NCBI GenBank assembly: GCA_025201805.1
Contig: MU619239.1
Location: 5,736 to 69,735, forward strand
Origin: Parasitella parasitica NRRL 2501
Taxonomy: Eukaryota; Fungi; Mucoromycota
Reading direction: 5' to 3'
Length of the DNA: 64,000 bases
Shown: piece by piece, positions 39,473-42,400 of the stretch
Layout of the letters: every line of letters starts with the position of its first letter
Numbering within the stretch: the stretch's first letter is position 1
Position numbers and translations under genes: made by a program
Notes under the pieces: model-generated
The model's database searches: none
Seen by the model: only the letters and a program-made list of their open reading frames with translations
What the model was told of the DNA's origin: nothing

Positions 39473-42400
39473 TTATGCAAAAGCATCCTCAATGTCTGCT
39501 TCAGTTGATGCTTCAACCTCACTACTAAAGTTCATAAAGTGGGCAGCACGATGAGACTCGTGGTAAAACTCTTTTGGTACATCCAAAACAAGTCTGTAAT
39601 TGATATTAGCGCTGAATTGAGCACCCATAACTAAGCGATGAGAGAGAAGAGATTAATAAAAATGATATGCAATAAAAACAAACAGAATGCTTACAGTTGT
39701 AATTCCAAATATCAGAAGGCACCATAAAATAACCAAGGAAGCGATCAGACAGAAGAACTTGAACCTTTTCACCATGAGTAGGCAAATACCCTTGAGGCTG
39801 ATTTCCAGGATCAACATTAGTCTTGCCCCATTCGAAACCAGCAGGCGACAACTTGTATGCAGTGAGCGAACAAGAACCAGGTGTGAATGAGCAAGTCAAT
39901 ACTACAGTCTTTTCACCATCCCAAGTCTTGTTGTTGGCCAGCAACTTGGCGTGAGTGGTCACATCCTGAGGCGACACATTCATCAATTCTTGAGGTTGAG
40001 TGTGGATCCAACCTAAAGGCTCCAAATCACTCAAATATTCATGTTCAGGTAGTGTGTTGGGAAGATGAACAGTTTGATGGGTGCCCCATTGAGGAGGAAT
40101 GACCACGCAACGAATTTCTTTGACATTAGGAGCATCAGGTGGACTAACGCCATACATGAAACCAGCAATTTGAGTACGTAAATCAGAAATGGTGATGAAT
40201 CTCTTCAAAACATTCTTTGGCATGACATAGGTATAGGTGTCCTCCTTGATATCGTCAGAATTGACATATATATGGTTGGTTCTCAAGTACAGGTTAGTAG
40301 CCGAGATGGCACGGATACGCCATTCGGTCTTGCTGGAGAAAGTGGCTTGCTCATAATTACTGGTGGTTGTAACGACCATTTCGTCGCCATGGATATTGTG
40401 GGTCTTTGTGGTGACAGCAGTCAATTGTGATTGTTCCTTGGTCTGCTTTTCGATTTCGGCAATCTGTTGGCGTTGAAGAGATGGTGCTTGGATTTCCATA
40501 CCCAGAATGATATCTCTGATTTCGGACTGGGTGAGAGAAGCAACATTGACGTTGTTCTTTTTACCATAGTCAGCCAGAATCAAATCCTTTAGTTGGACTT
40601 CGACCTTCGCCCATTCTTCATCCGACAGAGTAGGCCAGATATGATGAGGTTCAGTGATTGTGCTTCTATCAGGACGCAAAATCATCTTTGTCTTGTCGGT
40701 GTTGACGTGAAGAGCACGCAAAATCAGAACCAAACGAGAAAAGGCAGTGTAAGATGAAAAGGTTTTCAGCCAGTCATCATAAAGATTAAACAGAACCATT
40801 TGTGGTTCAGTGGCTCTTAGAATCAGATCACCAAACTTTTCCACTTTGAGACAAGCTTGGAAGGGCAACTGAAGCTCAGAGCCCTTGATGACAATATTGG
40901 GGAAATCAAGCAAATGAACTTCCAAAGGATCCAACATACCCTTTCTTGTAACAATGATCTGCTTGGGTTGTTCTTCGACAGGCAATGAACGAATCAAAGC
41001 AGCAACTTCTTCGGCAGTCTTCCACTTGGCCAACTGACCAAGACGCTTTTGACCAGCCCAGACAGATGTGTGGATAATCTTCAAGAAGAGCTGACCAGTA
41101 CGAGGATTGAAGATGAAGATGGCACCGTTGATGGGCTTGGTGGTCAAATTGCCTTCAAATGTCTTGTGGATGGTAACACGGTATACATTCGTATCATCGA
41201 CAAACCAGATAATTTGGTTACTGAACAGTTCACCATAGTTGGTAGAGGACAGATAGGGTTCAGTAGGTTCGGATGAATACAATTGGAGAGCTTTACGAAT
41301 ACGTTCACGTAAAACATACAAAGCAGGGTTGGCCTTCATAATCTTGCCCATAGCCTGCTGGACAAGTGGCTTCATACCAGGAATCCAATTACCGTAAGCA
41401 GAGTACATGTTATACGCAAGATCAACACCAACCATTAAACCAGTGGGGGACGGATAGATACTCATATTGTCAGTAGTGTAGTCCAAGAATTTAGCACGAG
41501 TGTATCTTTCAATGTCGTGAGAGTCGAAATCACCCCATCTTAGCTGAATATCGAGCCAGTACTTGGTAGTTGTAGGACCTTCCATCACATCCTTGGGATC
41601 ATTCAAGAGCGAGGGACGAGAAACGGGCCACTTGTATGCAGCAAACAATAGAATATCTGAGGCAGATGAGTTCATCTTGTAAGACTTTCTAGGATGGATG
41701 GTTTCCTTCTGGACGGTTTCAATTTGAAGAGCCTCCAATTCACGGTCAAAAACCTGAGCAAAATCCATAGTCAAGGCTTCGTGGATCTTTTGCCACAAAT
41801 GTGCACGGAAAATCTGGATGAGAGAAATCTTGAGGGTAGGGATCTTACCATGCATGAAAATACCGGTTAAATCAAGCTGCACTTGGAAACCCACATAGAC
41901 ATTAGCACGACTGTAGACAGAACCGTTAGATATATGGATATTTAAAGCAAAGTAGATCTTACTTGATCGTAGGACTCCACCAGAGAGTGAAACGACGATT
42001 AGGAATTTGATTCAAACCGGATCTTTGAGCATTGGTAAGTTTCTGAATGATACATTGTCAGCAACACAGGATGAACAATTCTCAAGCAATTTCAACATAC
42101 CTTGGACGCCATCGATTGTTCAAAACCACTGCTCTTTTCCCAGAAAAGGCTATCAAAATATAGTTAGATACCAGCAGATGCTGCGGCGCCGCTCTCAATA
42201 ACACTTTACCCTTCCCATGATGTATGGCCGGTACCCTTGAAAAGGGTATGCTCTAAAATACCTTCGACACCGCCCAAAGCTTGAATCATATCTGTACGGT
42301 AATTGTTCAAATTCCAGAGTTTACCATCGTGGCGTTGATGAGTCCACCAGAAAGGATTGTTCTTGAGAACCTGGTACTGCTTGAAATCAGTACGCACACG

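Follow-up and report, generated by a model that had tools for sequence, protein, structure and literature searches.

An empty intein site bracketed by introns in the PRP8 gene of Parasitella parasitica, and rapid intron turnover at that site in Mucoromycota

The PRP8 gene of Parasitella parasitica

The window examined here, a stretch of 64,000 nucleotides (nt) of contig MU619239.1 (positions 5,736 to 69,735) from Parasitella parasitica NRRL 2501, contains a complete PRP8 gene, in the middle of which three short introns crowd around an unoccupied intein insertion site, site a. An earlier note on this DNA had proposed that these introns defend the gene against the homing endonuclease of the intein. 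Comparison with related fungi points in another direction. In Mucoromycota, the roughly 65 nt around site a gain and lose introns far faster than the rest of the gene, and this comparative pattern around the locus is more interesting than the locus itself.

The gene occupies 39473-46821 on the minus strand. Reading of the sequence, together with scripted assembly of the exons, gives six exons (190, 4363, 49, 80, 2216 and 158 nt from 5' to 3') separated by five GT-AG introns (59, 60, 58, 52 and 64 nt). The product of 2351 amino acids (aa) is free of internal stops and colinear with the PRP8 of other fungi. The features of the gene are as follows.

46632-46821, minus strand: exon 1, starting at the ATG
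46573-46631, minus strand: intron 1, 59 nt, phase 1, after aa 63; common to most Mucorales and Umbelopsis
42210-46572, minus strand: exon 2, 4363 nt
42150-42209, minus strand: intron 2, 60 nt, phase 2, 19 nt upstream of site a; GTAAAG donor, CTAAC branch motif, TAG acceptor
42101-42149, minus strand: exon 3, a mini-exon of 49 nt encoding (G)LFWEKS and then SGFEQ; it holds the empty site a
42043-42100, minus strand: intron 3, 58 nt, phase 0, 30 nt downstream of site a; GTATGT donor, CTGAC branch motif
41963-42042, minus strand: exon 4, a mini-exon of 80 nt
41911-41962, minus strand: intron 4, 52 nt, phase 2, 110 nt downstream of site a; GTAAGA donor, CTAAC branch motif
39695-41910, minus strand: exon 5, 2216 nt
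39631-39694, minus strand: intron 5, 64 nt, phase 1, after aa 2299; common to Mucorales and Umbelopsis
39473-39630, minus strand: exon 6, 158 nt including the TAA stop

The product of exon 2 is 99% identical to the deposited P. parasitica protein CEP14852.1 and 83-96% identical to PRP8 of other eukaryotes. Database searches used exon 2 or part of it, the joined spliced model being reserved for local scripts. When the full model is set against CEP14852.1, the alignment is free of gaps, which shows that the deposited annotation uses the same splice sites. The 15 differences in 2351 residues indicate that the window and the deposited protein are from different strains or closely related species. 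CEP14852.1 begins 150 residues upstream of the ATG chosen here, in the region 46822-47271.

The three middle introns span 41911-42209. Their donors are of the GTAAG or GTATG type, and CTAAC, CTGAC and CTAAC motifs lie 15-20 nt before the 3' AG. Retention of the 58- or 52-nt intron shifts the reading frame, while the 60-nt intron brings a stop in its own second codon. Splicing is predicted because these signals, the restored frame, the deposited annotation and an orthologue all agree; judged by these features, the three are ordinary U2-type spliceosomal introns, whose removal restores the coding sequence of the conserved PRP8 1585-loop. Site a falls between 42131 and 42130, within the motif FWEKS/SGFEQ, which carries no insert, and the three introns begin or end 19, 30 and 110 nt away. 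The gene model thus confirms the anatomy that the earlier note had described, namely three GT-AG introns of 60, 58 and 52 nt with mini-exons of 49 and 80 nt, and an empty site 19 and 30 nt from its flanking introns. The note was also right that FWEKA/SGFEE is a genuine intein site, as Hint-domain inserts are found at exactly this point in five Mucoromycota.

The orthologue in question is that of Mucor plumbeus, which has an identical PRP8 exon-intron structure, with introns of 62, 61 and 56 nt at the three cluster positions. The most distal of these, at +110, is confined to Parasitella and M. plumbeus among the taxa sampled. Between the two species the cluster introns are 54-65% identical in forced global alignments, and they show no local similarity above that of shuffled controls. 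The exact 2351-aa protein of M. plumbeus is also recorded from Logan and ENA, on contigs of 5-10 kb; these contigs would be spliced transcripts if the gene calls there ignore splicing.

Intron 1 (46573-46631, minus strand; L002:691-752) contains a 13-nt block, ACTGCGCCACGAA, that is kept in Parasitella and M. plumbeus. The rest of this intron, like all the other introns, has diverged between the two species beyond alignment, and the block may be a regulatory or structural element. A gene for an NT-C2-domain protein lies directly upstream of PRP8 in Benjaminiella, M. plumbeus and Backusella, which supports the orthology of those three loci.

Neither a resident intein nor a free endonuclease was found in Parasitella, as queries with the Pilobolus intein and PF05203 gave no match in the gene or in the rest of the genome. 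Introner-like or transposon-derived introns were rejected, as a search of the 32.8-Mb assembly with the 299-nt cluster found no second copy. A common origin of the introns was also dismissed, as pairwise comparison of different introns yielded no similar pair.

Introns and inteins at site a in related fungi

PRP8 loci were compared in eleven named Mucoromycota and in one Mucor-like genome from JGI (L092). Intron positions are expressed as nucleotides from the intein insertion point, negative upstream and positive downstream. They were mapped by exact placement of the annotated protein on the DNA and with a custom spliced protein-to-DNA aligner that had been checked on known structures. This aligner models inteins as false introns; loci that bear an intein were mapped via annotated proteins or after removal of the intein DNA. 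The arrangements at site a are listed below.

Parasitella and Mucor plumbeus: no intein; introns at -19, +30 and +110
Mucor-like genome L092: no intein; introns at -33 and +23 around a 56-nt mini-exon
Mucor hiemalis: intein of 303 aa; intron at -10
Pilobolus umbonatus: intein of 482 aa; intron at +24
Podila humilis: intein of 211 aa; intron at +23
Rhizopus stolonifer: no intein; intron at +29
Absidia repens: no intein; intron at -3, and another at +262
Rhizophagus clarus: no intein; introns at -20 (GC donor) and -2 around an 18-nt micro-exon
Benjaminiella poitrasii: intein of 156 aa; no near-site intron
Backusella: no intein; no near-site intron
Umbelopsis: no intein; no intron within 260 nt
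Phycomyces nitens: intein of 176 aa; no flanking intron, and a 65-nt frame-breaking intron inside the intein DNA
Environmental Mortierellaceae contig L062: no intein; intron at +24

Site-a inteins are thus present in five of the 12 sampled genomes (Benjaminiella, M. hiemalis, Pilobolus, Phycomyces nitens and Podila), as inserts of 156-482 aa. Each of the five scores well above the cut-off for the Hint family. The 482-aa insert of Pilobolus also gives a weak match to the Pfam family Hom_end, just under the curated cut-off, and is taken to hold an endonuclease remnant.

Several of these loci have peculiarities of their own. The site-a mini-intein of Phycomyces nitens is encoded by 593 nt, not a multiple of three, and a 65-nt GT..AG stretch within this DNA (L006:5778-5842), 69 nt before the C-terminal junction of the intein, is annotated as an intron; it looks like a spliceosomal intron inside an intein gene. 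The 18-nt micro-exon of Rhizophagus clarus (L011:5946-6118) encodes (G)LFWEK(A) between a GC-AG and a GT-AG intron. Several Glomeromycota models (among P0016, P0017, P0018, P0021 and P0023) mishandle this micro-exon, inserting KYYMGLLFR or KC, or skipping LFWEKA. The Absidia glauca model (P0010) runs from ..ALGG straight to ASGFEE with the loss of 25 residues. A -3 acceptor like that of Absidia repens would account for this, and judging from the protein model the two species may share the -3 intron.

The PRP8 models of Batrachochytrium dendrobatidis JAM81 (P0031) and Neoconidiobolus thromboides (P0025) read FWEKACSDFMVLHNSGFEE and FWEKALHNSGFEE, respectively. They keep only the first and last few residues of a site-a intein, which indicates that the gene callers spliced out most of the intein as an intron. 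The models of M. hiemalis (L003) and R. stolonifer (L005) start too far downstream, missing the first exon and the 5' intron. Inteins and micro-exons at site a often spoil PRP8 models, as in Batrachochytrium, Neoconidiobolus, Rhizophagus irregularis and Absidia glauca, and inteins lie hidden in such models.

Two Mucor-like contigs from Logan (P0004 and P0156) have an exon-2 open reading frame (ORF) that reads ..LFWEKASGFE, then GKIVVIY and a stop. This tail suggests a GTAAG donor at +13, inside the core target of the endonuclease. Positions guessed from ORF read-through are unreliable, however: for L092 the guess was about -27/+27, as against -33/+23 on the DNA. The putative +13 intron, deduced from protein, was left out of all statistics.

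Clustering of intron positions at site a

The earlier note had called for a check on whether introns are enriched near the intein site, and this enrichment is borne out. In the 12 Mucoromycota PRP8 genes, introns occupy 42 distinct positions along a coding sequence of 7053 nt. Of these, nine are found within 30 nt of site a, where 0.36 would be expected (binomial P ~1e-10), and none of 100,000 permutations placed nine positions in any 61-nt interval. When neighbours 1 nt apart are merged, five of 38 positions are still near the site (P ~2e-5).

As the site had been chosen from the Parasitella cluster, the test was repeated without Parasitella and M. plumbeus. Of the 40 positions that remain, eight are no more than 33 nt from the site (0.38 expected; P ~4e-9). 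Counted by lineage, with the discovery lineage excluded, a near-site intron is present in seven of 11 (0.54 expected; P ~1e-6). The association of introns with the intein site is not due to chance.

Among 80 loci from environmental eukaryotes, only two of about 30 distinct positions fall in this interval, at +24 in an alga-like contig (L085) and at +26 in a protist (L060/L061), a comparison made by count alone. These loci are mostly intron-less, being probably transcripts, and include no Mucor-like locus, so that they form a weak background sample. By these counts, the sample shows no enrichment comparable to that at site a in Mucoromycota.

Ancestry of the near-site introns

A maximum-likelihood tree of the exteins was used to ask whether the positions are old or new. 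Mortierellaceae, Rhizophagus, Umbelopsis, Absidia with Hesseltinella, Phycomyces and Rhizopus branch off in turn, leaving a group composed of Benjaminiella, Pilobolus, Backusella and the Mucor clade. Within the latter, Parasitella and M. plumbeus are sisters with full support, and L092 joins them weakly. There are ten verified positions from -33 to +30, each confined to one terminal lineage of this tree. Since ten introns could not have shared 65 nt in one ancestor, and each position belongs to one terminal lineage, the near-site introns are mostly independent gains, with slides of 1 nt possible for some pairs.

An alternative starts from one or two old introns near the site, which some lineages would have retained, with shifts of a few nucleotides, and others would have lost; the cluster would then be a relic. 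Four pairs of positions do lie 1 nt apart (-20/-19, -3/-2, +23/+24 and +29/+30); +23 occurs in Podila and in L092, and +24 in Pilobolus, L062 and L085. In addition, the -10 intron of M. hiemalis appears to match an intron of human PRPF8, if the latter is placed by a figure legend in Barzel et al. 2011 (PMC3159444). Retention, however, would require at least nine independent losses per position, and sliding by more than 1-2 nt is rare. The enrichment survives the merging of 1-nt neighbours, and Backusella, Benjaminiella and Umbelopsis have no near-site intron at all. A purely ancestral cluster was rejected on the extein tree, and descent from a few old introns is very improbable.

As for the Parasitella cluster itself, its distribution on the tree places its origin after the divergence from the M. 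hiemalis line. It is derived, yet old within its small clade, having lasted long enough for its introns to drift beyond alignment between Parasitella and M. plumbeus, which differ at 33% of third-codon positions. The earlier note had named as damaging to its idea the case that the intron positions are ancestral and equally present in alleles that carry an intein. The tree speaks against the first part of that case. As to the second part, near-site introns at other positions occur in the intein-bearing alleles of three of five lineages.

Do the introns protect against homing?

The explanation put forward in the earlier note was that the introns have been selected for splitting the endonuclease target, or the homology beside it, leaving the empty allele immune and the mRNA unchanged. 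The strong clustering at the site is in keeping with this idea, as is the fact that the same proposal has been made for Eupenicillium, Bathycoccus and Anaeramoeba. The fast divergence of the introns would also leave only short homology beside a break between populations.

If the introns were protective, they should tend to be absent where an intein resides. Near-site introns are found in three of five intein-bearing lineages, as compared with six of eight intein-free ones (Fisher P = 1), so that the anticorrelation between introns and intein occupancy for which the earlier note had asked was not found. M. hiemalis (-10), Pilobolus (+24) and Podila (+23) each have an intron beside a resident intein. 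The same holds in Dikarya, where Butler et al. 2006 (PMC1508164, Tables 1 and 4) list a short intron of 51-177 bp 'almost immediately downstream' of site a in many species, among them euascomycetes and Cryptococcus, beside resident inteins, and do not treat it as a defence. In Backusella and Umbelopsis, the site has remained free of both introns and inteins.

The defence hypothesis fares somewhat better when only introns that bracket the site, or split it at 3 nt or less, are considered. Such arrangements are seen in four of eight empty lineages (Parasitella with M. plumbeus, L092, Absidia with its -3 intron and Rhizophagus with its -2 intron) and in none of the five that bear an intein. This contrast is not significant (P = 0.10).

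The position of the introns relative to the target must also be taken into account. The PRP8 endonuclease of the site-a intein of Botrytis cinerea was assayed in yeast by Barzel et al. 2011 (PMC3159444), where recombination rose about 1800-fold with its native target and about 50-fold with a human genomic target in agreement at 11 of 11 residues. The figure legend has this human target begin with an intron nucleotide in the Trp codon. As read from that paper, some 33 nt (about 11 codons, from about -12 to +21, or from the Trp of FWEK to the Met of SGFEESM) suffice for the Botrytis enzyme, which tolerates intron sequence upstream of about -10.

The 49-nt exon of Parasitella retains everything from -19 to +30. 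The stretch from about -12 to +21 lies wholly inside it, and the introns lie outside that stretch. Because the 11 or so codons that suffice for the Botrytis enzyme are contained in this exon, an enzyme of that type would probably still find its target despite the cluster introns. The claim that the introns break up the DNA target is therefore not supported, and for the intron at +110 no plausible role in target recognition can be seen.

A second claim was that the introns disrupt the flanking homology needed for homing. In the course of homing, sequence differences that the recipient has beside the break are normally removed by resection and co-conversion, and repair goes ahead. This claim too finds no support. 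Homing would more likely erase flanking introns than be blocked by them, in keeping with the Benjaminiella intein allele, whose flanks are free of introns. The mere presence of introns beside an intein site does not demonstrate immunity, since here they coexist with inteins and lie outside a sufficient target. Selection of the introns as a barrier to homing is, all in all, a decidedly unlikely explanation of the cluster.

Changes in the extein around the site

The coding sequence next to site a has also been altered. Across the whole of PRP8, Parasitella has changed at six of 1633 columns that are invariant in eleven outgroup fungi, and three of these six lie 5-9 residues after the site (P ~8e-5), within the 49-nt mini-exon. 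L092 has changed two of the same invariant residues, to different amino acids. In the Mucor clade, then, the hot spot extends to extein residues that are otherwise invariant.

Within the core target, the substitutions of Parasitella are Ala to Ser at -1, the residue before site a, Glu to Gln at +5, and Lys-Tyr to Ala-Ser at +8/+9. When the lineages are compared with the flanks of the Pilobolus intein, Parasitella and M. plumbeus show the largest number of nucleotide differences in -15..+15. Should the Parasitella allele be refractory to homing, these core-target substitutions would be a likelier cause than the introns.

A link to the homing endonuclease

The reading that we favour, and to which we assign a probability of about one half, is that site a in Mucoromycota is a hot spot, tied to the intein endonuclease, at which introns turn over and the extein changes, whether through repair, co-conversion or added selection. 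The tie is suggested by the clustering of introns, their independent gains, the presence of inteins in the group, the clustered extein changes and the contrast with the environmental eukaryote sample. The second bracket, in L092, where introns at -33 and +23 enclose a 56-nt mini-exon, also counts in favour of a hot spot. From this pattern we infer both the causal link to endonuclease activity and the steps by which it might operate.

The most likely driver would be the homing endonuclease encoded by the site-a intein, an element common in the group. Repeated cleavage and homing at site a would lead to error-prone or aberrant repair of the break and to co-conversion with donor flanks. Such events could create, erase or import introns and codon changes beside the site, and selection for alleles that are cut less well may add to the turnover. 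In Parasitella and M. plumbeus, the outcome would be an empty site in a 49-nt exon, with introns at -19 and +30 and a further one at +110.

The recent, lineage-specific and parallel gains at one locus that mark break-repair-associated intron gain are found here. Gain of this kind has been described in Daphnia (Li et al. 2009, as cited in PMC3749507). The earlier note had offered scars of break repair as its own alternative to defence. That alternative fits the fast turnover of positions better than defence does, yet it is unproven and there is no recognizable scar. More generally, what stands of the note's interpretation is the non-chance link between introns and site, the derived state of the introns, the circulation of inteins in the group and the unusual residues in the mini-exon; defence, as it was framed, does not.

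A number of observations weigh against the proposed link to the endonuclease. No flanking repeats, no origin for filler sequence and no similarity between introns were detected, similarity of the introns to flanking exons or intein DNA lying outside the comparison, and no intron is directly tied to a break-repair event. The cluster introns would be old enough for such marks to have been erased. Only the positions -3 and -2 sit at the expected LAGLIDADG cut, those at -33, -20, -19 and +23 to +30 being 20-30 nt away. The near-site introns of the alga-like and protist contigs come from groups with no known site-a intein, and the human PRPF8 intron would lie at about -10, as far as the legend in PMC3159444 allows. 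The sample, moreover, comprises 14 lineages overall with one genome each.

A rival reading is a local hot spot that owes nothing to inteins. Introns might be favoured here by proto-splice sites (AAG/G, AAG/TAC), by micro-exon control of PRP8 expression or by the location in the middle of a long exon. Overlap with the intein site would then be coincidental, or both elements would prefer the same conserved loop. The +24 and +26 introns of the non-fungal contigs count in favour of such a hot spot, as would the human intron that the same legend places at the Trp codon. Several intron positions follow AAG, and Rhizophagus PRP8 has other micro-exon clusters.

Many of the junctions are nevertheless unlike proto-splice sites (..GAAGG/C at -19, ..CAC/ACC at -33, ..GCA/ATA at +23 and ..CAA/TCG at +110), and AAG/N contexts should, given typical codon composition, be common across a 7-kb coding sequence. 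A property of the loop itself is also hard to reconcile with the broad eukaryote sample, which shows no comparable enrichment by count, and it leaves the burst of amino-acid changes at invariant residues unexplained. A hot spot of this nature is accordingly held to be unlikely.

The origin of new spliceosomal introns is a long-standing open question, and natural cases with a trigger that can be named are rare. Many independent introns at the defined cutting site of an endonuclease that is still present in the group open the link between breaks and intron gain to direct testing; the gene is essential and ultra-conserved, and moulds such as Mucor, Phycomyces and Pilobolus can be cultured. A bolder proposal would make site a a natural spot of nuclease-driven intron birth, with at least ten independent introns within about 33 nt, a reshaped extein and, in some lineages, a mini-exon that boxes the intein out; we advance it tentatively, the odds being somewhat against it. 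If it is true, no clearer natural example would be known of intron gain induced by a nuclease, or of an arms race between host and intein in a nuclear gene.

Comparison with known systems

Parts of this picture have been published, namely the idea of introns as homing barriers, the mutual exclusivity of intein and intron in PRP8, and an intron just after site a in Dikarya. The literature searched contained no report of a bracket of several introns around site a, of some ten independent intron positions around it in Mucoromycota, or of an accompanying replacement of invariant extein residues, and no statistical test of the association.

The Dikarya intron, as described in PMC1508164, would resemble the group of introns at +23 to +30 seen here. 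That study scored Rhizopus oryzae as lacking it; in R. stolonifer an intron is present at +29.

The endonuclease of Botrytis cinerea shares the insertion site. It is active, homes in 100% of meioses in crosses (Bokor et al. 2010, as cited in PMC3158057) and cuts a short target centred on the site. It is an ascomycete enzyme and applies to Mucoromycota by analogy, the corresponding domain of Pilobolus falling just below the Hom_end cut-off.

A role for introns as barriers has been proposed for Anaeramoeba, where introns occur at or near intein sites (Gallot-Lavallee et al. 2023, PMC10710043), and for the prp8 intron of Eupenicillium (Elleuche et al. 2009, as cited in PMC10710043). The hypothesis is the same as that considered here, in that gain of an intron disrupts the recognition site of the endonuclease. 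In those systems, as described in PMC10710043, the introns are within about 3 nt of the site, whereas those of Parasitella are 19 and 30 nt away and outside the sufficient target. An intron acting as a homing barrier should lie inside the recognition sequence and exclude the intein; by reference to the Botrytis target the Parasitella introns lie outside it, and near-site introns and inteins occur together.

Host-gene changes concentrated at the borders of an endonuclease target have a parallel in the raised exon diversity beside mobile-intron homing sites reported by Repar and Warnecke 2017 (PMC5378118), who proposed co-conversion or mutagenic repair as the cause. Their system consists of mitochondrial group I/II introns and single-nucleotide polymorphisms within species, in contrast to the nuclear intein site described here, where amino-acid replacements and turnover of spliceosomal introns are seen between species.

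A further related case is found in Bathycoccus, where a PRP8 intron and an intein occupy the same codon and are mutually exclusive, and where intein-primed gain of the intron has been raised (Monier et al. 2013, PMC3749507). Both systems have spliceosomal introns at or around an intein insertion site of PRP8 in alleles that have no intein. In Bathycoccus, however, the site is site d and a single intron lies at the very codon, polymorphic within one species, whereas in Parasitella the site is site a, and three flanking introns are fixed and old in their clade, with many other positions occupied in sister lineages.

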